Sequence record: PV611058.1
Reading direction: 5' to 3' (one strand)
DNA length: 64,000 nt
Below the pieces are notes generated by a model. It was not told where the DNA came from. It saw nothing but the letters and a program-made list of their open reading frames with translations, and did not search any database. Positions 1 through 64,000 of the stretch are shown one piece after another; position 1 is the first letter of the stretch; every line of letters starts with the position of its first letter. A program made the position numbers and the translations under genes.

Positions 1-31
1 GCCCCAAATGAGGCATCAAATGAAATTCAAA

Positions 32-727
32 TTAGACCCACTCTTCCACGCCACCGCGACGTTTGACGAGATACTTACCTTCTTCGTTGCGTGGACCAAG
101 GATGATACCATCAATGAAACCATGTTCACCGTATTCGAGTGCTTCTTCAGCGTTCAACCACAGGTCACGATCCGCATCTTTCAGTAGTTGTTCGTGTGAT
201 ACACCAACTGCTTCAGCGATTTCTTTAGTCAGTAGTGTGTTCAATGCATCAGAGTGTTTCAAGGAAATCTTCTGATCAGTAATCAGACCCTGAGTACCGG
301 AACTTACTTGGTGACACATGAAGTAAGAACGCTTCCCGCCTAGACGGAAACCTTTAGTACCAACTACTGATTGTGTATAGCAACCCATTGATGCTGCATA
401 ACCCATTACTACTGTACGGATAGGAGATACACAAGACTTAGCAATGTCAGCGATACCCAAACCTGCGTGTACTGAACCACCAGGAGAACTAATGTAGAAG
501 GTAATTGGTTCAGAACCCTGAGAATCCAACCACACCAATTGTTGCTTGATGATATGTGCCATTTGGTCATTGAAGTCAGTATCAAGGAAAATGATACGGT
601 CTTGCATCATACGAGATGCTAGATCATAAGTACGTTCTGCACCATTAACTTTTTCAACTACATAAGGAATAGAAATGTTGCGAACTTCACCACCAGCATA
701 ACCACCAAAATTGAATTGTTCAACCAT
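32..727 (-). CDS. clpP: ClpP-family serine protease subunit
   Basis: RIIFL, ISSPGGSV, AASMG (catalytic Ser), MCHQ (His), DRDLWL (Asp). Confidence 0.95.
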   Translation of the reverse strand: MVEQFNFGGYAGGEVRNISIPYVVEKVNGAERTYDLASRMMQDRIIFLDTDFNDQMAHIIKQQLVWLDSQGSEPITFYISSPGGSVHAGLGIADIAKSCVSPIRTVVMGYAASMGCYTQSVVGTKGFRLGGKRSYFMCHQVSSGTQGLITDQKISLKHSDALNTLLTKEIAEAVGVSHEQLLKDADRDLWLNAEEALEYGEHGFIDGIILGPRNEEGKYLVKRRGGVEEWV

Positions 728-761
728 TGTTATTTTCCTCTATTGTTTCATTGATGTGAGT

Positions 762-789
762 ATTATATCACAGTGTTCGTATTTGTCTA
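762..789 (-). promoter_or_regulatory. sigma70-like promoter upstream of clpP
   Basis: TAGACA-16nt-TATAAT with TGn extended -10. Confidence 0.7.
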
Positions 790-1170
790 CAAGTTTCTTA
801 AAAAATCTAGTAAACCGCAAATTGTATGTTTATTAAACATATCGTGGTCAATCTTTAACAACTTAACCATAGCATTATCATACACCGTAGAGTCGGTAAT
901 GTCAAACAAAGAATTTGTGTAATAACGTTCATTTTCTACATAAATGTATAATTCATTTGATTTGTCAAGATCTTCATAGAAGTTAGCATCAAAGTACTCT
1001 GCATTTCCATCAATCCAAACCTCAACTGAATCATCATCTAAGCAGTAGTTTCTTGCTTCTTTTGAATATATTTCCAGCTTTCTGGCTGCACTGGAGTAAT
1101 GTTTATAACCATTAATTACGTACTTTATTTCATCATTGTACTCAATTACATACACAACGATATTTTCCAT
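787..1170 (-). CDS. hypothetical protein
   Basis: 127 aa, abuts upstream gene. Confidence 0.75.
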   Translation of the reverse strand: MENIVVYVIEYNDEIKYVINGYKHYSSAARKLEIYSKEARNYCLDDDSVEVWIDGNAEYFDANFYEDLDKSNELYIYVENERYYTNSLFDITDSTVYDNAMVKLLKIDHDMFNKHTICGLLDFLRNL

Positions 1171-1565
1171 CAGTACTCCCTAATTGATACCAGTGCGTTA
1201 AGAAATTCTAAACGAATTCCACATGGGATGGTATCAAAATCAACCTCAATCATTCTGAATGAATCAGGGAGTTCATTTATAACGAACATATTACATGCAA
1301 ATGTACTGAAAGGTAACACATCACCGTTACTATCATCACAAACAACAACCCACACTTTACCACTAAAAGAATCCAAATCATCTGCTCTCTGGACCTCGGG
1401 ACCATAGTGATACCTATCTTTCAGTACTACATTGGTTCCTTTCTTATCACCATAGAATTGAACTTTATCACAATATGGCACTAGACTCATACCATATCGT
1501 TGGAACACACGAGAACTTCCATTGATTACAATCATTTTGTCTTTTATATGCAATGTATATATCAT
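1170..1565 (-). CDS. hypothetical protein
   Basis: 131 aa, in operon. Confidence 0.75.
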   Translation of the reverse strand: MIYTLHIKDKMIVINGSSRVFQRYGMSLVPYCDKVQFYGDKKGTNVVLKDRYHYGPEVQRADDLDSFSGKVWVVVCDDSNGDVLPFSTFACNMFVINELPDSFRMIEVDFDTIPCGIRLEFLNALVSIREY

Positions 1566-1574
1566 AGTAATTCC

Positions 1575-2366
1575 TTAGATTTCAAATACAAATTTAGGAT
1601 CGTAATCGAAGTTCTCACATGCACCACTGTAAGATTCATAACCTCTTGGATTACAAATGATACGAGTTTTCCCAATGTTGTAGTCAAAGCTACTATGAAC
1701 GTGACCATGAATCCAAACATCAGCACCCAAATCTTCGATGTACTGGTCCATATCAGAACAATAACATCCATTCAGTGAGTCATTCTTGTATCTCGGAGAT
1801 ACACTCTGATAACTTGGTGCATGATGTGTTACCACCACAACCTTGAAATCATTATCATTCATTAGACGAACTGTGTTAACTGAATTTTTGATAAATTGTT
1901 TATCCTGATGATGCATGAACTCAACATCATCAGGTTTGAGCTTACGTTTCCACGGTTCTGATGTTGTTCCATGACGAATGTGTTTATAATCATTCATCTT
2001 TTGTTGAGCATCAAACTTAACCAGTGCGTTGCCTTTATCAAAGTCAGTCCACAGTGTACTACCAACCAGCAGTACACCATCCAGCCATACAAATTTGTTT
2101 TGCAAAAAGATGAAATTTGGAATCTCATCTTGCATATCGGACAGTACTTTATTAGTCTTGTGAATGTTTGAACCGTAGTACTCATGATTACCAGGAACCA
2201 GTACTACATTCTTGAACTGCTTGCACAGGGATTCGATACCAGTACGATAACGACTGCGTTTAGCTTCATCAAAGTCCCCTGCAATAATCAGTACTGTATC
2301 ACTGTAATCACCACTATGGAGGTAATCAGTGCCACCGTGTACGTCTGACGTTACAACAAATTTCAT
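1575..2366 (-). CDS. calcineurin-like metallophosphoesterase
   Basis: SDVH, AGD, GNHE, THH, HGHVH motifs. Confidence 0.9.
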   Translation of the reverse strand: MKFVVTSDVHGGTDYLHSGDYSDTVLIIAGDFDEAKRSRYRTGIESLCKQFKNVVLVPGNHEYYGSNIHKTNKVLSDMQDEIPNFIFLQNKFVWLDGVLLVGSTLWTDFDKGNALVKFDAQQKMNDYKHIRHGTTSEPWKRKLKPDDVEFMHHQDKQFIKNSVNTVRLMNDNDFKVVVVTHHAPSYQSVSPRYKNDSLNGCYCSDMDQYIEDLGADVWIHGHVHSSFDYNIGKTRIICNPRGYESYSGACENFDYDPKFVFEI

Positions 2367-2385
2367 AATTACCTCCTATAAATGA

Positions 2386-8750: not shown

Positions 8751-9047
8751 TTAATATATAATCTCACTTACTTCTATGGTGTAGACACCATCATCAGTCA
8801 TTAATCTAACTGCAACTTTAATATTACTAGACATTCGTGTAACTATCAATCCAATAATTATACCATTCTTTAAAGTACCATTATGGTATCTAACTTTTAC
8901 TTCAGTTTTATTATCAATTAAGTATCTTCTAATTATGTGTATTTCCGTTCTAAACAGTTCTAAATAAACTTCACTATACTCCTTATCAGAACCATCAGCA
9001 CAGCTATACAATAAATGTACCTGTTCTAACAAAAGTTTTAAATTCAT
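8751..9047 (-). CDS. hypothetical protein (family D-like)
   Basis: helix followed by KVRY...GIIIG beta-rich C-terminus. Confidence 0.7.
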   Translation of the reverse strand: MNLKLLLEQVHLLYSCADGSDKEYSEVYLELFRTEIHIIRRYLIDNKTEVKVRYHNGTLKNGIIIGLIVTRMSSNIKVAVRLMTDDGVYTIEVSEIIY

Positions 9048-9403
9048 AAGAACCTCACAGATTTAATATTACTTGTTACATGTTTAAACACAGTGTTATC
9101 GAACTTGTAAACAATTGTATTAAGTGATTTATGAAAATTAACCTCGCACACTAATGCCTTGGAACCATTGATTGTACAGACCGTGGATGGTAAGTTGTTT
9201 GCTAATATCTCTTTTTCATCTAAACATAGTGAACTAATACAATCATAATAGAGAGGTTCAAGAACTTTTTCAGTACTAAGAAAATCGAAAGCAAGATCAT
9301 CTATTTGTTTTATGTAATTGAATAAATTTTGATAGTACTCATTCATGGTCGATCCTCTTGAATTTAGCATTATTCGAATAAGTATATGAATGTCCAAAAT
9401 CAT
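9044..9403 (-). CDS. hypothetical protein
   Basis: true start probably MNEYYQ. Confidence 0.7.
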   Translation of the reverse strand: MILDIHILIRIMLNSRGSTMNEYYQNLFNYIKQIDDLAFDFLSTEKVLEPLYYDCISSLCLDEKEILANNLPSTVCTINGSKALVCEVNFHKSLNTIVYKFDNTVFKHVTSNIKSVRFL

Positions 9404-54346: not shown

Positions 54347-54536
54347 GTAAAGCTAACAAATACTTCTGTACTGCTTGCTCTTGATGATCTGTACCTAAAA
54401 GTATATACATCCATAATTCACTGTAATGTACATCTTGTGTATAAGGGTTGTTGTAACTTTTTGATAATATAGCATCAAATTCAGATGCATGAACCCTTGC
54501 GAACTTAAGCATATCTTGTTGTGTTATGATTCTCAT
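54315..54536 (-). CDS. family B paralog
   Basis: LGTDHQEQAV. Confidence 0.85.
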   Translation of the reverse strand: MRIITQQDMLKFARVHASEFDAILSKSYNNPYTQDVHYSELWMYILLGTDHQEQAVQKYLLALRDATANGVRV

Positions 54537-54748: not shown

Positions 54749-54984
54749 AGTTTATCCCTGATGCCATTTAAAAGTGCTCTAATATGCTCCTGTACGAATT
54801 TGTACTGACTGTCTGTTCCTAGAGTGAGTAGTAATCTTAAATCTGAACTTTTGATATGATATTCTAAATCATTATTTGATTCTTGCATCAGTTTCTTAAA
54901 GGATGAGAAGTTTGCAGCCATTAGTTCAATGTATTCTGCTGTTCCTAGGGGTTTGTGTATTGGCTGTTTGTGCTGTCTGTGCAT
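54745..54984 (-). CDS. family B paralog
   Basis: LGTDSQYKFV. Confidence 0.8.
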   Translation of the reverse strand: MHRQHKQPIHKPLGTAEYIELMAANFSSFKKLMQESNNDLEYHIKSSDLRLLLTLGTDSQYKFVQEHIRALLNGIRDKL

Positions 54985-55196
54985 TTTAATTTTATTACCC
55001 TTTTGAGTGTATTAATGTAATTATACACATTGGCTTCTTGATAGTTTGTTCCTAGAGTAGCTTGAACGTAGATTTCATTTAACTTAATAATTTTATCAGT
55101 ATCTGGAAGTTTTGATGTGTTAATGGCAAATAACTTCGAAAACAGTCCATTTATGATTGTTAGGTATTCTACTTCGGTAATGATTCGCATTTGCAT
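54945..55196 (-). CDS. family B paralog
   Basis: LGTNYQEANV. Confidence 0.85.
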   Translation of the reverse strand: MQMRIITEVEYLTIINGLFSKLFAINTSKLPDTDKIIKLNEIYVQATLGTNYQEANVYNYINTLKRVIKLKCTDSTNSQYTNP

Positions 55197-55402
55197 TGGA
55201 TAAACCTTTTTAGTTCTTTGATGTAATCATTAATATTACATTCTTGATAGTTAGTCCCTAGGGTAGAATTAACATAGATTTCACTCATTAGAATATTTTT
55301 TTCTTCATCAGGTAAATCTGTGGTCTTTGCTATATACAATTTTAGAATTAAACTACTTAATAGTTCGTGGTATTCACTTGGTGAAAGGATTTTCATTTGC
55401 AT
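55169..55402 (-). CDS. family B paralog
   Basis: LGTNYQECNI. Confidence 0.85.
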   Translation of the reverse strand: MQMKILSPSEYHELLSSLILKLYIAKTTDLPDEEKNILMSEIYVNSTLGTNYQECNINDYIKELKRFIQCKCESLPK

Positions 55403-55608
55403 GTTCTCAGTACAGATTCTTTAAGTTCATCGATGTAGTCCTCAACGAATTGCTCTTGGAAGTTAGTTCCAATATATAAAAGAACTCTTAAATCTGCTCT
55501 AAGTAACTCTTTTTCATCATCATCTATATCAGACAATGTTATGTTTAAGAATTTACTTGTATTAAAGATTAACAATTCTGTTTGTTCACTGTGGCTTAAA
55601 ATTTTCAT
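55393..55608 (-). CDS. family B paralog
   Basis: IGTNFQEQFV. Confidence 0.85.
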   Translation of the reverse strand: MKILSHSEQTELLIFNTSKFLNITLSDIDDDEKELLRADLRVLLYIGTNFQEQFVEDYIDELKESVLRTCK

Positions 55609-55816
55609 AATCTCTTTTTGCTTTCCTCGACAGTAGGTACAAATACGATTCTTCGTATTGTGCTTGGAAGTTTGTGTTTAAGAGTCGAAACAACTTCTGT
55701 TCTTCTAGAACGAGTTGCTTATCTTCATAACAACGGTAGCGTATCAACTTTTTGTATTCGATGTTGATTACATCCATTACTATAAGCCCATGTTCATCAT
55801 CTGTCAAGTGCTTCAT
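55586..55816 (-). CDS. family B paralog
   Basis: LNTNFQAQYE. Confidence 0.85.
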   Translation of the reverse strand: MKHLTDDEHGLIVMDVINIEYKKLIRYRCYEDKQLVLEEQKLFRLLNTNFQAQYEESYLYLLSRKAKRDYENFKPQ

Positions 55817-56055
55817 GCTTTTTTTCTTTTCCTGATGTGTTTAGTTAAAAGGTATATTAGTTTTCTGATGTATTCTTCCTGATAGTTTGTTCCTAGGAGT
55901 GCAAGAAGTTTTGCTTCAACTAAAGCTAATTGACGTTCTTCAAATGTGTGTTCCAGTATGTACTTTGGGTTTGATTTTTTAGAAATTGCACTATTAGTTT
56001 TCATTACAATCTTATGATATTCATTAACTGTTAGGATTTTTAAATTCTTGAGCAT
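55813..56055 (-). CDS. family B paralog
   Basis: LGTNYQEEYI. Confidence 0.85.
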   Translation of the reverse strand: MLKNLKILTVNEYHKIVMKTNSAISKKSNPKYILEHTFEERQLALVEAKLLALLGTNYQEEYIRKLIYLLTKHIRKRKKA

Positions 56056-56281
56056 GTATCTTTTCCTTTATAGAGAATTTAAGATATCGAAGCATACTTT
56101 CAATGTAATACTCTTGTCTGTCAGTTCCAAGAAAGTACAGGAGTTGAATGTATAAAACTTCTGCACTCCTTTCGGCATGTGACTTGTTTGTGTCGTTTGG
56201 AAGTTGATTTGTAAGTTTTCTGGATTTAATTAATCGTTCTTTTAACTCATCGTCTGTTAAGTATTTCATTTCATTTTGCAT
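56024..56281 (-). CDS. family B paralog
   Basis: LGTDRQEYYI. Confidence 0.85.
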   Translation of the reverse strand: MQNEMKYLTDDELKERLIKSRKLTNQLPNDTNKSHAERSAEVLYIQLLYFLGTDRQEYYIESMLRYLKFSIKEKIHAQEFKNPNS

Positions 56282-56501
56282 TTACTTTTTCCTTAATACT
56301 CATTACAAGATGTTCAATCATATTTTGAACCATAAATTCTTGTTTATCAGTTCCAAGAACGTATGGTAGCTTCTGAAACAATACATTCGCAGACATTTCA
56401 TATATTGATTGATTTGGAACGAACTTAAGAGTAATGTTATTGGCTTTTAACATCTTCTCTTGAAATTCTTCATTCGTTAAGTATATCATTTCACTTTGCA
56501 T
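56271..56501 (-). CDS. family B paralog
   Basis: LGTDKQEFMV. Confidence 0.85.
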   Translation of the reverse strand: MQSEMIYLTNEEFQEKMLKANNITLKFVPNQSIYEMSANVLFQKLPYVLGTDKQEFMVQNMIEHLVMSIKEKVNAK

Positions 56502-56727
56502 TTACTTTTTCCATAATAGTAATTTTGAGATATTTAATTATACGTTCAATGTGATACTCTTGCCTATCAGTTCCAAGAATGTATGGTAATCTTTGGAATA
56601 AAACTTCTGCACTCCTTTCCGCTGGGGTTTGGTTTGGGTTGTGTGGAAGATATTTTGTAAGTTTTTTGGATTTATCTAGTCTTTCTGTTAACTCATCATG
56701 TGTTAAGTATATCATTTCATTTTGCAT
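56491..56727 (-). CDS. family B paralog
   Basis: LGTDRQEYHI. Confidence 0.85.
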   Translation of the reverse strand: MQNEMIYLTHDELTERLDKSKKLTKYLPHNPNQTPAERSAEVLFQRLPYILGTDRQEYHIERIIKYLKITIMEKVNAK

Positions 56728-56963
56728 TTAATGTTCCTTACGTAAATTGTCTGGATTAAACAATCAATCCAAGTTTGAATATATTGGTTTTGATACTGTG
56801 TGCCTAAGAGACTCTGCATTTTAAACTCTGCTTCAAGTTCATATCTCTTTTCTATAGAAAAGCTCAAATGACCATATTCTTTATCGTATCTTCTCAGTGC
56901 TTCCCCAATTCTATCAAATCTTTCTGCTAATCTGATGTTATTCACAATATTCATCGCATTCAT
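56712..56963 (-). CDS. family B paralog
   Basis: LGTQYQNQYI. Confidence 0.85.
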   Translation of the reverse strand: MNAMNIVNNIRLAERFDRIGEALRRYDKEYGHLSFSIEKRYELEAEFKMQSLLGTQYQNQYIQTWIDCLIQTIYVRNIKCKMK

Positions 56964-57238
56964 CGATCAGTACACCTCAGTGGTTGGGTCATTTGATAAA
57001 AGTACAGCTTACCTTTGATTTCCAATAGTAACTCCGCGATTAAGCGATTTACTTCTGGCTCTTGATAGTTTGTTCCCAAGAATACACCCATCTTTAACTC
57101 ACGCATCATAATCATTTTCTTACTGTGTTGAATTTTTTGGTTGTGATAGATTGTATTACGTTTGTGTGTAATTTTTGTCATACGCTCGGTATATTCATCT
57201 TTACTTAAATTGATCATTTGCATGTTCATCAACCTCAC
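56960..57238 (-). CDS. family B paralog
   Basis: LGTNYQEPEV. Confidence 0.85.
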   Translation of the reverse strand: MRLMNMQMINLSKDEYTERMTKITHKRNTIYHNQKIQHSKKMIMMRELKMGVFLGTNYQEPEVNRLIAELLLEIKGKLYFYQMTQPLRCTDR

Positions 57239-57449
57239 ATTTATTTTCGATACAAATCATGAGTTCTCTAAGATAGTTTTTTATCTTACCTTCCTGATGG
57301 TTCGTCCCCAGGAAGTTGCATAACTCTGCTTCTATTATTTTGATTCTTCTGGTGTCAGGTTTCAATCTTTTGTTATTGAAGATTTGAATCCTTATATCCC
57401 TTGATGCATTTAAACGTTTTTGATATTCATGGAAAGATAAATTAATCAT
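57201..57449 (-). CDS. family B paralog
   Basis: LGTNHQEGKI. Confidence 0.85.
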   Translation of the reverse strand: MINLSFHEYQKRLNASRDIRIQIFNNKRLKPDTRRIKIIEAELCNFLGTNHQEGKIKNYLRELMICIENKCEVDEHANDQFK

Positions 57450-57673
57450 TTACTTTGTATCTCTCTCTTGAGGGCATCAATTAACAACAGTACAGCATTC
57501 TCTTGATAGTTTGTTCCTAAGACTGAAAGCATCTTAATCTCATTTACTACAATCAACTTCTTTGAGCGTTCAATAATGTTACTATTATAAACGGCGTTAC
57601 GTGCTGGATAAGTTTTTGCAAGACGTTCATAATATTCATCTTTACTTAAATTAATCATTTGCATTTCTCGCAC
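57446..57673 (-). CDS. family B paralog
   Basis: LGTNYQENAV. Confidence 0.85.
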   Translation of the reverse strand: MREMQMINLSKDEYYERLAKTYPARNAVYNSNIIERSKKLIVVNEIKMLSVLGTNYQENAVLLLIDALKREIQSK

Positions 57674-57899
57674 GTTTACTTAGTTTACTTCCAATGTATT
57701 TCTTAAGTGTAATTATATATTCCTCTACATAATACTCCTGATAGTTAGTTCCTAAGAATGCACATAGCTTTGTCTCACGCTTCATAATCATCTTATTTTC
57801 GTGTTTGTTTACTTCACCGAAATGGATTTCATTAAGTTTAGGTAAGATTTTTGCTTGGCGTTCTTTATATTCAGATTTACTTAAATTAATCATTTGCAT
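57651..57899 (-). CDS. family B paralog
   Basis: LGTNYQEYYV. Confidence 0.85.
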   Translation of the reverse strand: MQMINLSKSEYKERQAKILPKLNEIHFGEVNKHENKMIMKRETKLCAFLGTNYQEYYVEEYIITLKKYIGSKLSKRARNAND

Positions 57900-58108
57900 T
57901 TACTTTTGACCTCCTTGACTAATGCATCAACCCACATGTCTATATACATTTGTTGATAGTTTGTCCCTATGAGTGCCCCTGCATAGAGTTCAGCTATCAA
58001 TGTATGTTTTAGGTTGGCAGGGATGCTCTTATCAGATTGAATCTTTACTCTTCTGTTGGCACATGTTTTCAGGAGTCTGATGTATTCAAAGCCTTGTAAT
58101 TTTCTCAT
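57890..58108 (-). CDS. family B paralog
   Basis: IGTNYQQMYI. Confidence 0.85.
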   Translation of the reverse strand: MRKLQGFEYIRLLKTCANRRVKIQSDKSIPANLKHTLIAELYAGALIGTNYQQMYIDMWVDALVKEVKSKCK

Positions 58109-58320
58109 TCTTTTGATATCACCTTGTTACGTAAGGCACTTAACAATACGTCAGTGTAGATGTTTTGATAGTTTGTTCCTACGAATGCACCCAACTTCAT
58201 TTCAGCTATTATAACACATTTATCCTCTTGTGCAATAGACTTGTCTAAAGAAATACTAACAACTTTCCTTCTTATAGCTTGTAACCTCCAATGATACTGA
58301 TACTCATTTAGTGTTATCAT
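58105..58320 (-). CDS. family B paralog
   Basis: VGTNYQNIYT. Confidence 0.85.
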   Translation of the reverse strand: MITLNEYQYHWRLQAIRRKVVSISLDKSIAQEDKCVIIAEMKLGAFVGTNYQNIYTDVLLSALRNKVISKE

Positions 58321-58555
58321 TCTCTCGCCTCCATATCTCGGTTCTAATGTGTTGACATTGTGCTTCGATGAACATATCTATTGATTTGGCAATTGCGTTT
58401 TTATCTGTGCCTGTCATCAGTACAAGCATCTCGGCCTCACAGTGAAGTAAACGCATGATATCATAGGGTAATATTCCAGATACCGTGTCATAGTGTTTCT
58501 GTGCCAGTGTCTGCAATAGTTTACAATACATTTTGTGATTTAGTCTGTGTCGCAT
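58304..58555 (-). CDS. family B paralog (divergent)
   Basis: MTGTDKNAIA. Confidence 0.75.
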   Translation of the reverse strand: MRHRLNHKMYCKLLQTLAQKHYDTVSGILPYDIMRLLHCEAEMLVLMTGTDKNAIAKSIDMFIEAQCQHIRTEIWRRENDNTK

Positions 58556-58812
58556 TGTTTATTCCATTCTTTTTTGGCCTTGATGGTTTTATATTGGATT
58601 TGGTTTCTTAATGCTGATAAGTATCGTTGAATGAACAGATCTTGATAGTTTGTTCCAATGAATTTCATAAGATAAAGTTCACCGTTGATAACATCCACTT
58701 CAGGTGCACCATATAAGGCATTGTTTTTTCTAAGGGCATGGATTAAAGAGAATAGGGCAGTTTGATACTCAACTCCTGATAAAGTCTTCATGTTTTGTGA
58801 GCCAATAATCAT
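58540..58812 (-). CDS. family B paralog
   Basis: IGTNYQDLFI. Confidence 0.85.
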   Translation of the reverse strand: MIIGSQNMKTLSGVEYQTALFSLIHALRKNNALYGAPEVDVINGELYLMKFIGTNYQDLFIQRYLSALRNQIQYKTIKAKKEWNKQCDTD

Positions 58813-59050
58813 CTAGTTTATCCTGTATAACATTCATTAATTGTTCGACATATTCTGTGCAAAACTTATCTTGATATTGAGTCCCCATAAAGTACAGCAA
58901 CCATAGCTCATTAACTTTAGCTCGCATTTGGTTCCATGTAAGGCTGGGGTCATCGTAGACTATCCTTGCTATAGGGGTTAGTTTACGGACTATAGTTTCA
59001 TATTCATCTAGTGTTAAGTGTTTCATTTGCCTAAATCCCTGACATGACAT
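58769..59050 (-). CDS. family B paralog
   Basis: MGTQYQDKFC. Confidence 0.85.
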   Translation of the reverse strand: MSCQGFRQMKHLTLDEYETIVRKLTPIARIVYDDPSLTWNQMRAKVNELWLLYFMGTQYQDKFCTEYVEQLMNVIQDKLDDYWLTKHEDFIRS

Positions 59051-59247
59051 TTTAAGGCCGTGATGTGGTTGTCTACCATAACCTCCTGATAGTTTGTTCC
59101 TACAAATGGTATTAATGTTGAGTCTGTTAGTATAACATACTTTTCATTGGATGTTAGTGATTCATCATCGTAAACTTGAAGTCTAAAGTTCTTCCCTTGT
59201 TCTAATCGTTTAAGATATTCTTGAGTGTTTATGTCTTTCATTTGCAT
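59023..59247 (-). CDS. family B paralog
   Basis: VGTNYQEVMV. Confidence 0.85.
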   Translation of the reverse strand: MQMKDINTQEYLKRLEQGKNFRLQVYDDESLTSNEKYVILTDSTLIPFVGTNYQEVMVDNHITALKCHVRDLGK

Positions 59248-59456
59248 TTGTCCCTTATTAAATCAGTGAGGGCAACTATGTGTGCAACAACATACTCTTC
59301 CTGAAAGTTCGTCCCCAGTACAGCCATCATGCGTATATCGGTGGTGTTTATCCTGTGTTCCCTTACACATAAACCTTCTGTGTGAGGAAGTGTAAAATAT
59401 TTGTTTATTGCAGCAACGATAATTTTATTCTTCTCGGAATTACTTAAATGTTTCAT
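59238..59456 (-). CDS. family B paralog
   Basis: LGTNFQEEYV. Confidence 0.85.
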   Translation of the reverse strand: MKHLSNSEKNKIIVAAINKYFTLPHTEGLCVREHRINTTDIRMMAVLGTNFQEEYVVAHIVALTDLIRDKCK

Positions 59457-59665
59457 AGTTTACTCTTAATGTATTTCTGGAGTGCAATTATATACTCATT
59501 CAAGAAATGCTCCTGATAGTCTGTGCCGAGGAATGCACCCAATAGTATATCATTTTCCAATACTAATGCTAAGTTCAAATCATCAGTCTCTTCATATACT
59601 ATGAGAATTTCAAGTTGTCTTGCAGCGACGCGTTCGGTATATAGATTTGAGTTAATGCTATTCAT
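59453..59665 (-). CDS. family B paralog
   Basis: LGTDYQEHFL. Confidence 0.85.
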   Translation of the reverse strand: MNSINSNLYTERVAARQLEILIVYEETDDLNLALVLENDILLGAFLGTDYQEHFLNEYIIALQKYIKSKL

Positions 59666-59874
59666 AGTTTACTCTTAATGTAATTCTGGAGTGCAATTAA
59701 GTATTCCCCTACATAATACACCTGAAAGTCTGTATCCAAAAATGCACCCATAAGTAAATCTTTTTCTAATACCCTTGATAAGTTAAGGTCTGCATTTGAA
59801 TTGTATATAATTAAGATTTTATTCTGGACAGAAACAAAACGTATCTTATATTCTTCTGGTGTTAAAAAAATCAT
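59662..59874 (-). CDS. family B paralog
   Basis: LDTDFQVYYV. Confidence 0.85.
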   Translation of the reverse strand: MIFLTPEEYKIRFVSVQNKILIIYNSNADLNLSRVLEKDLLMGAFLDTDFQVYYVGEYLIALQNYIKSKL

Positions 59875-60080
59875 AGTTTACTCTTAATATCTTCTATTAA
59901 AAAATGAATCCAATCGTCAACATACTCTTCCTGATGGTTTGTGTTCAGTACAGCCAACATGCGGATCTCTGCTCTTGCAACTTGGATTTCAGTTTTAGAA
60001 AGGTCTTTGCTGATATCAAACATTAAGTCCATGTATTTCAAGATAAGACCGAATGATTGGGTTCGTGTTATAGTTTTCAT
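59871..60080 (-). CDS. family B paralog
   Basis: LNTNHQEEYV. Confidence 0.85.
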   Translation of the reverse strand: MKTITRTQSFGLILKYMDLMFDISKDLSKTEIQVARAEIRMLAVLNTNHQEEYVDDWIHFLIEDIKSKL

Positions 60081-60277
60081 TGTTTCCTCGTGGACAATAT
60101 TTTATTTTTCAATGTATCCATATATTGAATCACCCATCTTTCCTGATAGTTAGTTCCCAAAGTAATCAAAAGGTATAACTCCATTCGTTCTACGTGTGTG
60201 TCTGTATTATAAATCTTTGTGAAGTTTTTACGTAACAGTTCTTGATAATCTTCTTTATTTAAAATACGCATTTTCAT
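60077..60277 (-). CDS. family B paralog
   Basis: LGTNYQERWV. Confidence 0.85.
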   Translation of the reverse strand: MKMRILNKEDYQELLRKNFTKIYNTDTHVERMELYLLITLGTNYQERWVIQYMDTLKNKILSTRKQ

Positions 60278-60471
60278 AGTCTACCTTTTATGTCCCTTCG
60301 TAATTCTTGTAAGTATAGTTCGATATACTTTTCTTGATAGTTAGTTCCTATGAAAAGTTTCATAACCAATTCACGCTTATATGCAATACCACGGATATGT
60401 GACATATGTAAGATATATGCCATGTTGGATATGAGTGTGTGGTTGTGCTCTTCTTGAGTTAAAATACGCAT
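60274..60471 (-). CDS. family B paralog (first gene of array)
   Basis: IGTNYQEKYI. Confidence 0.85.
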   Translation of the reverse strand: MRILTQEEHNHTLISNMAYILHMSHIRGIAYKRELVMKLFIGTNYQEKYIELYLQELRRDIKGRL

Positions 60472-60501
60472 AGGGACTCCATTAAAAATAATATCAATCC
60501 A

Positions 60502-60529
60502 ATAATATACGATTCATATAAAAAGTCAA
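60502..60529 (-). promoter_or_regulatory. sigma70-like promoter driving family B array
   Basis: TTGACT-16nt-TATTAT, SD GGAG before first ATG. Confidence 0.65.
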
Positions 60530-60622
60530 TAACATTTTATTAGTAATACCCCTTTATCGAAGTCGCTAAGGTTACCCGCCCTTTAGCCCCCTACGCATTT
60601 TGCCATAGTCCAATCCCTTTTT

Positions 60623-60698
60623 ATTCATAAAAGTCAAGGGATTACCTATGCATTTTTTTAACGCTGAAGTTTAAAAATGTCTTGACTTTTTTATGATT
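60623..60698. repeat. imperfect inverted repeat
   Basis: ATTCATAAAAGTCAAG ... CTTGACTTTTTTATGATT. Confidence 0.6.
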
Positions 60699-60720
60699 CA
60701 GTACTAAATCCTTTTACGCA

Positions 60721-60930
60721 TTAATCCTTCGTTACGCTTACGATTATCTGTGTATCCCCATAGTCCTGCCATACTTCCACGCCAGCCGTCGCCCTGGTTA
60801 GTCGTGCTGTCATCTGCTTAATGGTCTTAGGCTTTAGTGGAACCTGTTGCAGTACTGTACGCATAGCACCATCGACGTTATCATGTACGCCTGCAATAGT
60901 GCCTAGAACGTTGTATACTGTATAGATCAT
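60721..60930 (-). CDS. early-region hypothetical protein
   Basis: 69 aa with SD GGAG. Confidence 0.75.
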   Translation of the reverse strand: MIYTVYNVLGTIAGVHDNVDGAMRTVLQQVPLKPKTIKQMTARLTRATAGVEVWQDYGDTQIIVSVTKD

Positions 60931-60954
60931 GTGTATGTACTCCTGATATAGTTA

Positions 60955-60974
60955 AGGCCGCTAGAGAGCGGCCT
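60955..60974. repeat. intergenic GC-rich hairpin
   Basis: AGGCCGCT-AGAG-AGCGGCCT, no T-tract. Confidence 0.75.
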
Positions 60975-60998
60975 ATGATGTTTGATGATGTGTAACGC

Positions 60999-61400
60999 TT
61001 ACAACCCTAAGATAGTGCGTGCTTCGTTACGTTCCGTACACAGCTGCATGATGTGAGCAAGTAAGTCCTTGCTAATGTATCCGGTGTTCATAGCTTCACG
61101 AATAGATACATCATAAGCACCGAACCCAGTGCGAACGATACGCACATCATTCAGGTTAGTATTATAGATACCGCCGAGATCAACGGCTTCGAATACTACA
61201 TCAACAGAATATTCATTGTTGCCATCGTGGAAGTTTTCCAGTGCAATAGTATTGGAAACCGCCCAACGTTTGCAGTTTCCAATGATGCGGCACTGTTCCG
61301 GTTGGATAGTGCCATTACTTACAGCGTACTCCAGTGCATCTTTACCAAAAGTCCGAGCCAGTACTAAAACGTCAGCGAAGGAAGTGATTGAGAAGGTCAT
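60999..61400 (-). CDS. early-region hypothetical protein
   Basis: start MTFSITS after SD AAGGAG. Confidence 0.8.
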   Translation of the reverse strand: MTFSITSFADVLVLARTFGKDALEYAVSNGTIQPEQCRIIGNCKRWAVSNTIALENFHDGNNEYSVDVVFEAVDLGGIYNTNLNDVRIVRTGFGAYDVSIREAMNTGYISKDLLAHIMQLCTERNEARTILGL

Positions 61401-61420
61401 GATAAAACTCCTTAATTTAG

Positions 61421-61487
61421 GAGGGAGAACCATTTCCCCCTCTCTATGTAAAACATTATACATGAATCTAAGTACTATGCAAGTACT
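61421..61487 (-). promoter_or_regulatory. early promoter plus leader stem-loop cassette
   Basis: TTGCAT-16-TATAAT; GAGGGGGAA-ATGG-TTCTCCCTC; two AGTACT. Confidence 0.85.
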
Positions 61488-61489
61488 TT

Positions 61490-61822
61490 TTACATTTTAA
61501 TACCTGGATTCAGGTAGCGGTGAGATCCATATTCTGGATCGGTTTCGGTCCAGTACTGTAAATCTATAGTACCTTTAGCGTTAATCTTATCTACCAGCTT
61601 ATTCATCTTAGCGTATACTACATCAGCATCGATGCGTTTAAAGCCAGTGGCTTTAGTGAAGTAGTAGTGATTTGCTTCACTATCATTCAGGATGTACCGA
61701 GAACCGTTTGCCGTTTGTGCGATAATGATTGAGTATTCTACGTTACGGTCGAGGCCGTCGATGAATACAGAGGAAACATTAGTACGGATGAAAGCTTTAA
61801 CGATAGCGATTGAAGTAGTCAT
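61490..61822 (-). CDS. early-region hypothetical protein
   Basis: 110 aa with SD AGGAG. Confidence 0.8.
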   Translation of the reverse strand: MTTSIAIVKAFIRTNVSSVFIDGLDRNVEYSIIIAQTANGSRYILNDSEANHYYFTKATGFKRIDADVVYAKMNKLVDKINAKGTIDLQYWTETDPEYGSHRYLNPGIKM

Positions 61823-61842
61823 TTTGAATCTCCTAACTTTGT

Positions 61843-61904
61843 GGGCCGTCGCACCATTGCCGCCCTACGAGATACATTATCGCAGTACTGATATACTTTG
61901 TCAA
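61843..61904 (-). promoter_or_regulatory. early promoter plus leader stem-loop cassette
   Basis: TTGACA-17-GATAAT; GGGC.GCA-ATGG-TGC...GCCC; AGTACT in spacer. Confidence 0.8.
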
Positions 61905-62017
61905 TACTTTTTTTATTAATAGTTTTAGTTCCACCAGCAGATAGTTACTCACCGTTATTAACTATATATTTTGGATACACCTATGCACCCTGTGGGCTAG
62001 TTTTTGTCTATGCGTAT

Positions 62018-62057
62018 ATAATAGCAAAGGGACTGACCGGAGTCAATCCCTTTTTTT
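62018..62057. promoter_or_regulatory. hairpin/terminator overlapping minus-strand promoter
   Basis: AAAGGGACTGAC-CGGA-GTCAATCCCTTT with T-run on +; TTGACT-17-TATTAT on -. Confidence 0.65.
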
Positions 62058-62068
62058 ATTCTTTTTTG

Positions 62069-62269
62069 TTAGATGATTCTCCAATCATCAACGATCATGG
62101 TAAGATACCGAACCAGTGATTCGAGTGATTCGTGTTCTCGATAGTCTGCCGCTCCACCAGCGGTACAAGTACAGCCGATTAAGCCGTTTTGTAGTTCCTG
62201 GATCTTTACGTCGATCTGGTTGGCTTTAGCTTCTTTCAGTACTTCAACCAGGGCGATAGCGATAGACAT
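62069..62269 (-). CDS. early-region hypothetical protein
   Basis: 66 aa with SD GGAG. Confidence 0.75.
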   Translation of the reverse strand: MSIAIALVEVLKEAKANQIDVKIQELQNGLIGCTCTAGGAADYREHESLESLVRYLTMIVDDWRII

Positions 62270-62291
62270 AATGTTTTACTCCAAACTATTG

Positions 62292-62352
62292 GCGGGAGAA
62301 CTATTCCCCCGCTCTATGTAAAACATTATACATTACTGGTTAGTACTGTCAA
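62292..62352 (-). promoter_or_regulatory. early promoter plus leader stem-loop cassette
   Basis: TTGACA-16-TATAAT; GCGGGGGAA-TAG-TTCTCCCGC; AGTACT overlaps -35. Confidence 0.9.
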
Positions 62353-62359
62353 ATAGTTT

Positions 62360-62617
62360 TTATGAAATATCTTCGATGTAGTCGGCCCATTTCATTTTTT
62401 CAGTACTGTCAATGGCTACCGGATTATTTGGATCAAACCATTCACCATCACCGCAATACATACCCACGGCTACGGTTTTATAGCCATCCTGGGCCGTACA
62501 CCACGACATTGCACGATAGATATGGCCTTTAACTGGTTGCAGTACTGGTAACGTTTTATGGTCTTCTACGTAGGCCATAGCTTGAGGATTTACCCGATAT
62601 TGTGTGAACTGATCCAT
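62360..62617 (-). CDS. early-region hypothetical protein
   Basis: 85 aa. Confidence 0.8.
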   Translation of the reverse strand: MDQFTQYRVNPQAMAYVEDHKTLPVLQPVKGHIYRAMSWCTAQDGYKTVAVGMYCGDGEWFDPNNPVAIDSTEKMKWADYIEDIS

Positions 62618-62645
62618 TATGTTTCCCCTTGTAGTTAGTAAAGTT

Positions 62646-62681
62646 ATTACATCAGTACTATCAAGCTATGTCAATAGTACT
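62646..62681 (-). promoter_or_regulatory. early promoter
   Basis: TTGACA-17-TGTAAT; AGTACT in spacer and upstream of -35. Confidence 0.75.
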
Positions 62682-62693
62682 GAAATAAAACTT

Positions 62694-62918
62694 TTAGATT
62701 AGATTATTGAGGCCGTCAATGGTAGACTCACTTTCTTCTTTCTCCCATTGTCGGTAGTACTTCCATGCTTCATGATAGGTGGCGATTAGTTCATCTTTTT
62801 GATCCTGGTTACATGCCAGTACTGAATCACGGTGAGCGGTGTTATAGATAGAATCGAATGATTTCTTCTCTTCTGCCAGGTTAGCTACTTCCCGCATCAG
62901 TTCATCAAAGTTAGCCAT
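62694..62918 (-). CDS. early-region hypothetical (coiled-coil) protein
   Basis: 74 aa with SD AAGGAG. Confidence 0.8.
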   Translation of the reverse strand: MANFDELMREVANLAEEKKSFDSIYNTAHRDSVLACNQDQKDELIATYHEAWKYYRQWEKEESESTIDGLNNLI

Positions 62919-62936
62919 TTTATTACTCCTTTTAGT

Positions 62937-62998
62937 GGGGGAGGATATCTCCCCCTATGCAAAACATTATACTTTGTTTTAGTTATTATGCAAGTACT
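62937..62998 (-). promoter_or_regulatory. early promoter plus leader stem-loop cassette
   Basis: TTGCAT-16-TATAAT; GGGGGAG...CTCCCCC; AGTACT abuts -35. Confidence 0.85.
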
Positions 62999-63249
62999 TT
63001 TTTCATATAAACATTAAATTCTACACCGCCGTAACCTTCCACGATGATATGTTTTGCGTTATCACGTTTGCACATAGTGAAACCATCGTTTACGTGTTTT
63101 GCATTTTCCAGGGCGACATCACCGATAGCGGCACATACGGCACTAATAACAGTATTCCGCAAAGTACTGGTATCATTGGCGGTCATAGTAGTTTGCAGTA
63201 CTACGTTGTCGTATACGTGTGCATTGATAGTGATTTCGATAGTGTTCAT
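62986..63249 (-). CDS. early-region hypothetical protein
   Basis: start MNTIEIT after SD AGGAG. Confidence 0.8.
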   Translation of the reverse strand: MNTIEITINAHVYDNVVLQTTMTANDTSTLRNTVISAVCAAIGDVALENAKHVNDGFTMCKRDNAKHIIVEGYGGVEFNVYMKKVLA

Positions 63250-63267
63250 GGTGTATCTCCTGGACTT

Positions 63268-63334
63268 GAGGGGAAACCATTTCCCCCTCTCGATATAAAA
63301 CATTATACGTTAATCTAACTACAATGCAAGTACT
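63268..63334 (-). promoter_or_regulatory. early promoter plus leader stem-loop cassette
   Basis: TTGCAT-16-TATAAT; GAGGGGGAA-ATGG-TTTCCCCTC; AGTACT abuts -35. Confidence 0.85.
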
Positions 63335-63336
63335 TT

Positions 63337-63528
63337 TTAAATTTTATTTCCGATATAGTCCGGCATGTTCTTTTCAGTCATACGCTTTGCTAATGTCTGC
63401 ATATGGCTTATAGCGTTCAAGGTGTCTTCCTCCAGGGATGAATCAAGATAATCAGGATCATTCTTCACCTTGCAATGATTATGATATCGTAGTACTGCCA
63501 GTACTTTTTTAACTTCTTCAACTGTCAT
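63337..63528 (-). CDS. early-region hypothetical protein
   Basis: 63 aa. Confidence 0.7.
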   Translation of the reverse strand: MTVEEVKKVLAVLRYHNHCKVKNDPDYLDSSLEEDTLNAISHMQTLAKRMTEKNMPDYIGNKI

Positions 63529-63797
63529 AATAAGTACCCCACTTCGTTAGCTTTCAGGTTAGTATCAATCATCAGTGGATTTTTGTAGTTCACAAAACGA
63601 GTAGTTTTCTCGATAGCGAAACCCATATAATCCAGCTTACTAACAGTACATTCATTCTTAAAAACTTCTTTCGCTGCATCGATGGCTGATTGCATGGATA
63701 ACCGCCCATCTAAGTTAATATTTCCAAATGATCCACCAGCAGAAGTAGGATTACCGTTCATATCTTTAATGATCATAGTAGCGGAGTAGCTGGACAT
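63525..63797 (-). CDS. early-region hypothetical protein
   Basis: 90 aa with SD AAGGA. Confidence 0.8.
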   Translation of the reverse strand: MSSYSATMIIKDMNGNPTSAGGSFGNINLDGRLSMQSAIDAAKEVFKNECTVSKLDYMGFAIEKTTRFVNYKNPLMIDTNLKANEVGYLL

Positions 63798-63821
63798 AAT
63801 TTTGTTTCCTTTTATTGGTGT

Positions 63822-63880
63822 GGGGAGAACTATTCTCCCCTTGATGTAAACTATTATACAGTACTGATATACTTTGTCAA
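63822..63880 (-). promoter_or_regulatory. early promoter plus leader stem-loop cassette
   Basis: TTGACA-16-TATAAT; GGGGAGAA-TAG-TTCTCCCC; AGTACT in spacer. Confidence 0.9.
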
Positions 63881-63886
63881 ATACTT

Positions 63887-64000
63887 TTATTCGCCCATAT
63901 AGATTAGATTATCATCGCCTACATAGGGATCGCAAACGTTGATTTCTTCGCAGTACTTCGTGAATACATCGCCATAGTGACCTAAACCACGATCCCAAAA
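63887..64000 (-). CDS. 3' end of a hypothetical protein (partial)
   Basis: manual translation ...FWDRGLGHYGDVFTKYCEEINVCDPYVGDDNLIYMGE*. Confidence 0.65.
   Translation of the reverse strand, partial: FWDRGLGHYGDVFTKYCEEINVCDPYVGDDNLIYMGE

Follow-up and report, generated by a model that had tools for sequence, protein, structure and literature searches.

A jumbo phage of Escherichia coli studded with AGTACT palindromes

Escherichia phage WPEC3, a giant phage of E. coli (Asteriusvirus, PBECO4/121Q-like), and its enterobacterial relatives each keep about 1,000 copies of the six-letter palindrome AGTACT, at 8–9 times the number expected by chance and 35 times the density of the host, and these copies are both spread through genes and built into early promoters. 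Phages normally purge restriction-type sites of this kind, and the excess thus points to an undescribed protein that reads or marks the phage's own DNA, although that such a protein exists is an inference. We examined a stretch of 64,000 nucleotides (hereafter the window), which is identical to positions 301061–365060 of record PV611058.1 with 0 mismatches, and then extended the analysis to the whole genome and to its relatives. An initial annotation made from the letters alone had described AGTACT as an iterated palindrome recurring far above chance; that observation is confirmed, and it extends well beyond the window.

AGTACT occurs 205 times in the window, whereas the expected numbers are 21 from base composition, 17.6 from an order-1 Markov model, 39.5 at order 2, and 84 at order 3. 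All four spot counts of the initial annotation are exact (10 in 19081–20280, 6 in 9001–10200, 7 in 40561–41780, and 2 in 1–1200), and its detail on a recent duplicate gene pair is also correct; 53436–53441 reads AGGACT and 53792–53797 reads AGTACT. The annotation had specified that the claim should fall if the excess vanished under a codon- and dinucleotide-preserving null, and it does not vanish under the null models so named: within open reading frames there are 181 sites, as compared to 52.4±5.9 (maximum 74) after synonymous-codon shuffling, a difference of 22 SD, and 24.2±4.9 after codon permutation. Sites in the window are distributed 68/46/65 over the three reading frames, with 26 more in 4.9 kb of non-coding or edge DNA. 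The unique 360 kb of the genome holds 1,006 copies against 122 expected (8.3x at order 0, 9x at order 1, and 4.7x at order 2), with frame counts of 417/153/283 plus 153 non-coding. One correction is needed, as the motif is not present throughout the window; there is none in 43933–52320 and none in 54727–60699. The layout of the window, including these zones, is as follows.

1–44144, no single strand: zone A, with 166 AGTACT (3.8/kb, 11x expected) in genes that almost all lie on the minus strand; the one-sided variant TGTACT (66 copies) rises towards the right end.
19682–20206, minus strand: orphan DNA N6-adenine methyltransferase gene (174 aa, Pfam PF05869 Dam family, E=6e-33, PHROG 'DNA methyltransferase', NPPY motif intact); a candidate enzyme for the site, of unknown specificity.
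44145–44221, no strand: masked stretch of 77 N, whose letters were not examined.
44222–52320, minus strand: zone B, with no AGTACT and no AGTAC on the plus strand, and with 45 TGTACT, which read AGTACA on the coding strand, 15x expected, in all three frames (16/15/12 plus 2 non-coding).
52321–54726, no single strand: zone C, with 16 AGTACT (6.6/kb) mixed with 10 TGTACT; it contains the duplicate pair 53378/53734.
54727–60699, minus strand: zone D, with no AGTACT and with GTAC at chance level; it is most of a tandem array of 26 old paralogous genes of 66–94 aa (mean 25% aa identity, shared LGTNYQE motif), the left-most members of which lie in zone C.
60569–64000, no single strand: start of the right copy of the 22,503-bp direct terminal repeat (record 1–22503 is identical to 361629–384131); from the first site at 60700 to the window end there are 23 AGTACT in 3.3 kb (22x expected), 10 of them intergenic.
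63853–63880, minus strand: example of a sigma-70-type early promoter with an embedded box, TTGACA-N9-AGTACT-G-TATAAT.
62654–62681, minus strand: example of a twin box, two AGTACT 22 bp apart (62654 and 62676) bracketing a TTGACA -35 hexamer in an intergenic promoter region.
61471–61487, minus strand: example of a twin box 11 bp apart (61471 and 61482), in which AGTAC-TTGCAT is the -35 element and a second AGTACT lies in the spacer upstream of TATAAT.

The sequences flanking the masked stretch map to record positions 345204 and 345282, such that the 77 N stand for exactly 77 record bases and the two sides are collinear. The annotated gene CDS620 runs into this gap, and the boundary between the AGTACT zone and the AGTACT-free zone lies between 43932 and 44349 and so contains it. 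Absence from independent assemblies had also been put forward in advance as grounds for rejecting the observation, and independent assemblies agree with it: PBECO4, RaK2, GAP32, fHe-Yen9-04, CBB, and Munch carry the same excess, and in four metagenome assemblies from four studies, which cover 48600–54599, only one of the 40 listed differences (of 125) touches a site. The AGTACT-free, one-strand state of zone B is likewise seen in fEgEco12, largely in ph0011, and in the four metagenome assemblies.

The sites override codon choice. Of 803 Ser-Thr pairs in the genome, 419 (52%) are coded AGT-ACT against 124 expected, the other two frames give 149 versus 29 and 284 versus 54, and even the Ser-Thr and Val-Leu dipeptides are raised, 1.5x and 1.3x. 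The sites are also retained: 74% are identical in PBECO4, as compared to 48% of all hexamers; between close relatives there were 3 losses against 8.6 expected, and 3 gains; and in core genes at about 60–70% aa identity, 19–27% of sites are still positionally shared. Selection and biased gene conversion predict the same conservation statistics. Copy number is held across genera, with seven clade genomes from six host genera carrying 850–1,235 copies each (record counts of 891, 937, 1,011, 1,008, 850, and 1,235, where the 1,235 of CBB counts both terminal-repeat copies), whereas the outgroups PA5oct (15 copies), XacN1 (0), Atu_ph07, and T4 avoid the word. E. coli K-12 has 400 sites in 4.64 Mb.

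The word is surrounded by a graded, symmetric consensus, CAGTACTG, with weak outer arms that give a 12-bp palindrome, TTCAGTACTGAA. C at -1 and G at +1 are found in 40–53% of sites, in most frames and in non-coding DNA, whereas G at -1 or C at +1 occurs in only 3–11%, apart from G at -1 in one frame (24%). CAGTACTG is the commonest 8-mer form, with 222 occurrences against 3 for GAGTACTC, and TTC-AGT is the commonest half-site. Variants at the outer positions are about 2x enriched and inner ones are not. A graded, symmetric consensus of this kind is typical of dimeric DNA-binding proteins. Information content is about 0 beyond ±3 bp and spacing is near-exponential, with uniform genome coverage; in other words, the sites do not behave as a dispersed repeat or miniature mobile element.

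In the terminal repeat, pairs of boxes flank the -35 and -10 of sigma-70 early promoters. There are 55 sites in 4 kb of terminal-repeat intergenic DNA, and their offsets to promoter hexamers are fixed: TATAAT at +7 (20 cases) and +27 (24), TTGCA at +5 (23), and TTGACA at -15 (18). Pair distances of 20–24 bp are in excess, 31 versus 13. Only about 5% of sites lie in promoters, and promoter control cannot explain the intragenic 95%. The same twin-box design occurs in Munch and CBB, and a search of IMG/VR for the exact pattern returned only about 15 contigs, nearly all of 345–378 kb; the design is found almost only in this jumbo clade.

The interpretation offered in the initial annotation is partly supported. 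The window is a phage, the excess is not a codon-pair effect, the word is actively retained (as site conservation, codon override, and constant copy number across genera show), and it stands out against ordinary palindrome avoidance in the same genome, in which GCGC occurs 0 times against 362 expected, GGTACC 0 times, CAGCTG once against 37, and CCGG at 0.36x. The comparison to HIP1, the highly iterated palindrome GCGATCGC of cyanobacteria, holds as a description; both are short perfect palindromes, over-represented many-fold (with thousands-fold significance here), present in all frames and between genes, more conserved than their surroundings, accompanied by a DNA methyltransferase in the same genome, and of unresolved function. 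A methylation- or repair-driven origin, however, is not supported. A bias driven by deamination plus very-short-patch repair, of the E. coli CCWGG type, would deplete the one-mutation neighbour produced by deamination, and no one-letter neighbour of AGTACT is depleted; AGTATT stands at 1.04x and AATACT at 1.30x, and the only low neighbours, AGGACT/AGTCCT, are explained at order 2, at 0.89x. A packaging or recombination signal, which had also been suggested, is still possible and was not tested. The annotation missed the promoter-embedded twin boxes, the clade-wide distribution, the two AGTACT-free zones, and the strand-polar variant.

Our best reading, to which we give a probability of roughly 0.45, is that AGTACT is a selected recognition site for a two-fold-symmetric, sequence-specific DNA-reading protein peculiar to the enterobacterial RaK2-like jumbo phages. 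In this view, the site works in two settings. The first is as paired, operator-like boxes about two helical turns apart, one abutting the -35 and one abutting the -10 of the early promoters in the terminal repeat, where binding or modification would switch early transcription. The second is as a dense tag, about 1 per 350 bp, randomly spaced and in every gene class, which makes phage DNA about 35 times richer in the site than host DNA. What our data establish is the excess, its independence from coding, its retention by selection or an equivalent bias, the graded palindromic consensus, the promoter placement, and the clade distribution; that a protein reads the site, which protein it is, and what binding achieves are inferred, as neither binding nor methylation was measured and the public sequencing runs examined hold contigs only, without kinetic or raw-signal data. 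Additionally, three observations have no explanation at present: the 8-kb zone with only a one-strand variant, which a symmetric reader does not explain, the 6-kb zone with no sites, and the total absence of GCGC. The leading candidate for the reader or writer is the conserved orphan Dam-family methyltransferase at 19682–20206, which would give a phage-specific methyl mark, although a non-enzymatic dimeric repressor or nucleoid-type protein is about as likely.

The candidate enzyme has points in its favor and points against it. AGTACT is a short palindromic word of the type recognized by restriction-modification enzymes, being the site of ScaI and also of Eco255I, and orthologues of the methyltransferase with intact NPPY are present in 7/7 AGTACT-rich genomes and in 0/4 outgroups, but this co-occurrence is confounded by phylogeny, as the clade shares hundreds of genes. 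Characterized PF05869 enzymes such as phage T1 Dam methylate GATC, not AGTACT, a property of the family that was not tested here, and the WPEC3 enzyme is about 30% identical to Stx-phage homologues annotated as Dam or N6-adenine methyltransferases; no solved or named homologue of known specificity was found, and whether the enzyme recognizes AGTACT was not assayed. The genome also encodes a DNMT3-like m5C methyltransferase. DNA of fEgEco12 cuts normally with ten other enzymes (PMC13070987), which says nothing about AGTACT.

Among the alternatives, two are unlikely but survive best. In the first, the site is a signal for an enzyme that tracks along one DNA strand, such as a Chi-like stop signal for a helicase-nuclease, a nickase or primase site, or a packaging-motor signal; the working unit would be 5'-AGTAC-3' on a single strand, with the palindrome serving both directions and the one-strand variant of zone B only one. 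For example, all 70 AGTAC in zone B lie on one strand and none on the other, the palindrome is removed there by diverse mutations, the near-exponential spacing and uniform coverage are as for Chi or uptake sequences, zone B lies 8–16 kb from the terminal-repeat boundary, where travel might be one-way, and true Chi is also enriched and strand-biased, with 7 and 24 copies against about 1 expected each. As to whether the word is a polar self-signal of this type, the evidence points both ways and does not settle the matter: the main word is symmetric, and only zone B, along with a gradient from window 23 kb on, shows a strictly one-strand variant, 45:0. Outside window 23–52 kb the two one-sided variants are equally common, 1.2–3x each, and the symmetric C/G flanks and fixed positions inside promoters fit a double-strand reader better. 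Known primases read three letters, and a cut site would tend to erase itself by gene conversion.

The second, equally unlikely, is a mutational or repair drive rather than function, in which motif-directed mismatch repair, biased gene conversion, or molecular drive during the heavy recombination of T4-like replication keeps converting near-matches into AGTACT, as proposed for HIP1 and for uptake sequences. The excess touches all frames and even shifts amino-acid content, as a drive would, gains and losses are in rough balance, a methyltransferase is present, and the phage has UvsX/UvsW-type recombination genes. Against this model, no neighbour is depleted and the outer-position variants are enriched, no Vsr-like gene was annotated, and a drive explains neither the fixed placement in promoters across genera nor two zones of 8.4 and 6 kb that lack the word entirely in a genome where the next largest gap is 2.3 kb.

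The remaining alternatives are very unlikely. Binding sites for a host protein of Enterobacterales, serving as a decoy or as a way to block cell division, were considered because the site of the nucleoid-occlusion factor SlmA, GTGAGTACTCAC (PMC3020112), has an AGTACT core in a 12-bp palindromic frame, because the trait is limited to phages of Enterobacterales, and because cells infected with the related phage Sharanji filament (PMC11895373). SlmA itself is largely refuted: it needs G1, T2, a purine at position 3, A4, and G5 in each half (GTRAGYRCTYAC; PMC3020112), whereas the phage has no site matching GTRAGTACTYAC, half-site matches are below expectation (20 and 11 against 27 and 31), the outer arms are TTC/GAA rather than GTG/CAC, and G at -1 is the rarest flank (3–8% of sites, 24% in one frame). 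An RNA-level signal, with AGUACU as a processing, decay, or modification site, would fit the facts that nearly all genes share one strand, that the coding strand of zone B always carries AGUACA, and that density is highest in early genes, whose messages must be cleared; however, an RNA signal need not be a palindrome, the flanks are symmetric, many sites lie in promoter DNA upstream of transcription starts at fixed offsets to -35 and -10, and genes on the other strand carry the word equally. Finally, codon usage, dinucleotide bias, a dispersed repeat family, or systematic sequencing error at a modified site are refuted by the nulls, by the uninformative flanks, and by the same excess in the four metagenome assemblies and in records from several laboratories under 2012–2025 accessions, one of them sequenced on Illumina HiSeq 2000 (PMC3622015); GTAC itself is 2.3–3x enriched and the order-3 model already predicts 84 sites, but those models contain the motif itself.

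HIP1 is a trait of cellular genomes at about 1/kb, whereas AGTACT is a trait of a virulent phage clade, with a 6-bp core and graded flanks at about 3/kb, built into promoters at fixed positions, absent from two long zones, and without repair-type neighbour depletion. DNA uptake sequences (USS/DUS) and Chi share with it the roughly 1,000 dispersed copies, near-random spacing, tolerance inside genes, strong enrichment relative to foreign DNA, and maintenance over long evolutionary spans with site turnover, but they are asymmetric and are read by uptake or RecBCD machines of cells, whereas this palindrome is in a lytic phage and has no known reader. Operator pairs of phage repressors and methylation-sensitive promoters (GATC in P1 and Mu mom or IS10-type control) likewise have two short palindromic boxes about two helical turns apart, overlapping the -35 edge and the spacer next to -10 of strong sigma-70 promoters; here, no repressor or methyl-reader is known, and the same box occurs about 950 times outside promoters, which ordinary operators do not. 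We found no mention of the AGTACT excess or of the GCGC absence in the open papers on RaK2, CBB, phAPEC6, Sharanji, and fEgEco12 (the GAP32 genome paper was not read). In practice, the motif density, the twin-box promoter, and the absence of GCGC form a near-unique signature for finding these phages in metagenomes, and the site also matters for engineering or restriction-mapping therapeutic jumbo phages.

A more speculative possibility, which we consider doubtful but which would be of great interest if true, is that the enterobacterial RaK2-like jumbo phages use a sequence 'barcode' instead of base replacement to tell their own DNA from that of the host. The positive tag would be AGTACT, read or methylated by a clade-specific protein, and the negative tag GCGC, with zero copies in 360 kb while it is common in the host. 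Together, the two would let phage enzymes silence or destroy host DNA and time early promoters, and the AGTACT-free, one-strand zone next to the terminal repeat would be a deliberately unmarked or one-way segment.

Virulent phages are textbook examples of purging short palindromes to escape restriction, and here a whole clade of the largest coliphages does the opposite with one restriction-type word while purging others completely. That the trait is held at about 1,000 copies per genome in seven genomes from six host genera implies a strong and unknown constraint. The defined 8–12-bp site, the conserved twin-box early promoter, and the candidate methyltransferase give a concrete handle on how nucleus-less jumbo phages organise, mark, or time their 350-kb genomes.

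The window matches Escherichia phage WPEC3 (PV611058.1) positions 301061-365060 at 100% identity, and a rebuilt record shows 0 mismatches against it. WPEC3 is an Asteriusvirus, a PBECO4/121Q-like jumbo myovirus, whose 384-kb record begins and ends with identical stretches of 22,503 bp that form a direct terminal repeat; the related phage fEgEco12 has a 20,993-bp repeat that was confirmed by digestion (PMC13070987). Nearly all genes in the window lie on the minus strand. The features to which we refer below are the following, in window coordinates unless stated otherwise.

19152-19685: gene for a 177-aa cytidylyltransferase-like protein (PHROG 3041; weak FAD_syn hit), overlapping the start of the next gene by 4 nt.
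19682-20206, minus strand: gene for a 174-aa Dam-family N6-adenine methyltransferase.
24000-44100: long runs of back-to-back minus-strand genes of 100-210 aa, with several small paralogue families (for example 33888-34382, 35122-35604 and 40603-42422), none of known function.
44145-44221: masked stretch of 77 N, standing for exactly 77 record bases, both flanks collinear with the record; the masked letters were not examined.
44222-52320: zone B, without AGTACT.
53150-60471: tandem array of 26 small paralogous genes (66-94 aa, mean 25% aa identity) sharing an LGTNYQE-like motif, directly inside the terminal-repeat boundary.
54727-60699: zone D, without AGTACT.
From 60569: right copy of the terminal repeat.
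Record 101295-102155, outside the window: gene for a 286-aa C5-cytosine methyltransferase.
Record 295157-295688, outside the window: five runs of 70-78 C where the annotation is fragmented (pieces called PhoH, portal, NUDIX, Sir2), which looks like an assembly or placeholder problem in the deposited 'partial genome'.

The excess of AGTACT reported in the initial annotation is confirmed, and its four spot counts, as well as its detail on a recent duplicate pair in which one copy reads AGTACT and the other AGGACT, are exact. The word occurs 205 times in the window, whereas 21 copies are expected from base composition and 17.6, 39.5 and 84 under order-1, order-2 and order-3 Markov models, respectively. 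It is by far the most enriched palindromic hexamer (9.6x), the next being ATGCAT at 2.0x. Codon- and dinucleotide-aware nulls had been singled out beforehand as the comparison that could make the enrichment vanish, and it did not vanish: within ORFs there are 181 copies, against 52.4±5.9 when synonymous codons are shuffled within each gene and 24.2±4.9 when codons are permuted. Over the unique 360 kb of the genome there are 1,006 copies (8.3x), and every 6-kb bin outside two special zones holds at least 7. Half of all Ser-Thr pairs are coded AGT-ACT (419 of 803, against 124 expected from codon usage), the frame reading xAG-TAC-Txx has 149 against 29, and the frame reading xxA-GTA-CTx has 284 against 54. 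Additionally, the dipeptides ST and VL are themselves raised (1.5x and 1.3x) while TS and LV are not; the word has therefore shaped both codon choice and, mildly, protein sequence. Together these Markov, permutation, shuffling and per-dipeptide tests reject a codon or dinucleotide artefact.

Is the word also retained over time? PBECO4 is 85% identical over window 1-43,500, has 146 sites in the same stretch, and keeps 74% of the sites letter for letter, against 48% of all hexamers. Between WPEC3 and Ecwhy_1 (98.5% identical), with PBECO4 as outgroup, 3 sites were lost against 8.6 expected and 3 were gained against 1.4 expected; the direction fits retention, although the numbers are small and frequent hexamers in general score 0.67. 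In seven core genes compared with GAP32 and fHe-Yen9-04 (about 60-70% aa identity), 7/26 and 5/26 sites sit at the same codon position. Individual sites therefore turn over slowly while the density is held. Independent assemblies had also been named in advance as a place where the excess might prove absent; four metagenome assemblies from four studies cover 48600-54599, and of their 40 listed differences (of 125), only one touches a site. An assembly or base-calling artefact is rejected on these grounds, including the idea that the TGTACT of zone B is a miscalled AGTACT, since the same letters stand in fEgEco12, ph0011 and the four metagenome assemblies.

The excess is a trait of a clade, as whole-record counts show.

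Whole-record counts of AGTACT and of the control word TCATGA.
Phage (host genus); AGTACT; control; record size
PBECO4 (Escherichia); 891; 135; 348 kb
RaK2 (Klebsiella); 937; 142; 346 kb
GAP32 (Cronobacter); 1,011; 169; 359 kb
fHe-Yen9-04 (Yersinia); 1,008; 137; 354 kb
Munch (Salmonella); 850; 149; 350 kb
CBB (Pectobacterium, both repeat copies); 1,235; 187; 378 kb
PA5oct (outgroup); 15; 40; 287 kb
Atu_ph07 (outgroup); 25; 82; 490 kb
XacN1 (outgroup); 0; 127; 385 kb
T4 (outgroup); 29; 51; 169 kb

In 40-50-kb samples of RaK2, GAP32 and fHe-Yen9-04, AGTACT is the single most enriched hexamer, whereas in the PA5oct sample it is the most depleted palindrome. The distant jumbo relatives PA5oct, Atu_ph07 and XacN1 avoid the word strongly, and the same word is under opposite pressures in sister lineages. 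E. coli K-12 has 400 copies in 4.64 Mb, or 0.086/kb, against 1,147 copies of the control word, and the phage is therefore about 35 times denser in the site than its host. In the literature searched, the papers on these phages mention neither this excess nor a second peculiarity of composition, the complete absence of GCGC: there are 0 copies in the window (49 expected), 0 in the unique 360 kb (362 expected), and 0 in every sample of PBECO4, fEgEco12, ph0011, RaK2, GAP32, fHe-Yen9-04, Munch and CBB, although the word is normal in PA5oct (35 vs 27). GGTACC is also absent, and CAGCTG occurs once (window 61041). The E. coli Chi octamer GCTGGTGG, by contrast, is enriched and strand-biased in this lytic phage (window 690, 5259, 12882, 20948, 61931, 62154, 63733); the genome has 7 on the + strand and 24 on the - strand, against about 1 expected each.

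No information lies beyond ±3 bp of the core, and a repeat family is rejected for that reason. C at -1 and G at +1 occur in 40-53% of sites, in most frames and in non-coding DNA, whereas G at -1 or C at +1 occurs in 3-11%, apart from G at -1 in one frame, where GAG codons give 24%. CAGTACTG occurs 222 times and GAGTACTC 3 times. The commonest half-site is TTC-AGT, which gives a weak 12-bp palindrome TTCAGTACTGAA (22 perfect copies); a literature search for CAGTACTG or TTCAGTACTGAA gave nothing useful. One-letter variants at the two outer positions are about 2x enriched, while inner variants are at expectation, and this graded, symmetric profile is what dimeric DNA-binding proteins leave. Periodicity of spacing, a check that had been proposed at the outset, was looked for and not found, either helical or codon-based: spacing is near-exponential with a mean of 354 bp, distances modulo 3 are 338/270/309, and the only excess is at 20-24 bp (31 pairs against 13), which comes from promoter pairs. 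Within genes the sites are evenly spread, with only small peaks just after stop codons and about 50 nt upstream of starts.

Intergenic DNA of the terminal repeat carries 55 sites in 4,044 nt, and they sit at fixed places in sigma-70-type promoters: AGTAC-TTGCA, where the last T of the box starts the -35 hexamer; AGTACT-A-TTGACA; TTGACA-N9-AGTACT; and AGTACT-n-TATAAT (examples of such early promoters lie at window 62654-62681 and 63853-63880). Genome-wide, the offsets +7 and +27 to TATAAT, +5 to TTGCA and -15 from TTGACA stand 10-20 times above background. Munch and CBB, from distant genera, have the same design, ATCAAA-AGTACT-TGCA...(G)AGTACT-T-TATAAT, with box centres 21 bp apart. Among 2.9 million IMG/VR contigs, the exact twin-box pattern occurs in only about 15, nearly all of 345-378 kb. 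About 5% of all sites are of this kind. Coding DNA shows a density gradient, from 14.9x in the terminal repeat through 8-11x in accessory or early regions to about 6x in replication and structural genes.

Two zones break the rule. Zone B has no AGTACT over 8.4 kb, whereas the largest gap elsewhere is 2.3 kb, which is what random placement predicts. Zone B also has no AGTAC at all on the + strand; instead, it has 45 TGTACT on that strand, which read AGTACA on the coding strand, 15x expected, in all three frames, and it never has the complement there. The one-sided variant already rises from window about 23 kb onward (5.6x in 23-44 kb). As to a polar signal of the Chi or uptake type, the main word is symmetric, only this zone and the rise from 23 kb show the one-strand variant, and the observations do not decide for or against membership in that class. 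fEgEco12 shows the same pattern, and ph0011 mostly does; where ph0011 has AGTACT, WPEC3 has AGCACT (twice), TGTGCT or TGTACT. The palindrome therefore looks counter-selected there rather than changed by one mutational rule. Zone B genes are mostly not paralogues of zone A genes (zone A being the AGTACT-rich stretch to the left of the masked letters). We have no tested explanation for zone B or for zone D, and AGTACT-free zones were not mapped in other genera. Zone D covers most of the array of 26 paralogous genes, of which only the left-most members carry AGTACT; a recent amplification of a motif-less unit is rejected there, as the copies are old, with only 25% identity.

The candidate reader is the 174-aa Dam-family methyltransferase encoded in the window (PF05869, E=6e-33). 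Orthologues with an intact NPPY motif exist in all seven AGTACT-rich genomes tested and in none of four outgroups, which is consistent with the site being its target. However, this co-occurrence is confounded by shared ancestry, and the specificity of the enzyme cannot be read from sequence; the sequencing runs consisted of contigs only, and neither methylation nor RNA ends were examined. Characterized relatives such as phage T1 Dam act on GATC, and the closest Stx-phage homologues, annotated as Dam or N6-adenine methyltransferases, are about 30% identical. A tblastn search with the methyltransferase returned 1,571 phage records with no information on specificity, and searches for solved structures of the Dam-family enzyme and for PHROGs of its neighbours gave nothing useful. 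The adjacent cytidylyltransferase-like gene is also next to the methyltransferase gene in PBECO4, Ecwhy_1 and vB_EcoM_E9.1 (Ecwhy_1 annotates it as ribonucleotide reductase A). The C5-methyltransferase encoded outside the window has as its best solved relatives the catalytic domains of animal DNMT3A/3B (E=1e-23, full length), which rank ahead of the bacterial M.HhaI and M.HaeIII, and this fits the CpG methylation reported for RaK2 (PMC3622015).

The interpretation in the initial annotation, that the motif is actively created or retained, for instance as a methylation- or repair-driven signature, is partly supported: retention is borne out, but deamination plus short-patch repair is rejected, as no one-letter neighbour of AGTACT is depleted. 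Among the alternatives, a strand-tracking signal and a conversion drive survive best, although we consider each unlikely; whether indel or recombination breakpoints between relatives coincide with sites was not examined. A host-factor decoy and an RNA-level signal are both very doubtful. For the host factor SlmA the reading is rejected, because its site needs G1, T2 and a purine at position 3 (PMC3020112), no such site exists here, and that flank is the rarest; a TrpR-like half-site (GTACT) was considered but not pursued.

What the analysis establishes is an excess that is real, large, clade-wide and maintained; that a protein reads the site is our inference. The best-supported mechanism, to which we give a probability of about 0.45, is a selected site for a symmetric DNA-reading protein, and we do not choose between methylation by the Dam-family enzyme and binding by an unknown dimer. 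In this view, the site would serve these phages as an operator-like twin box in early promoters and as a dense phage-DNA tag elsewhere.
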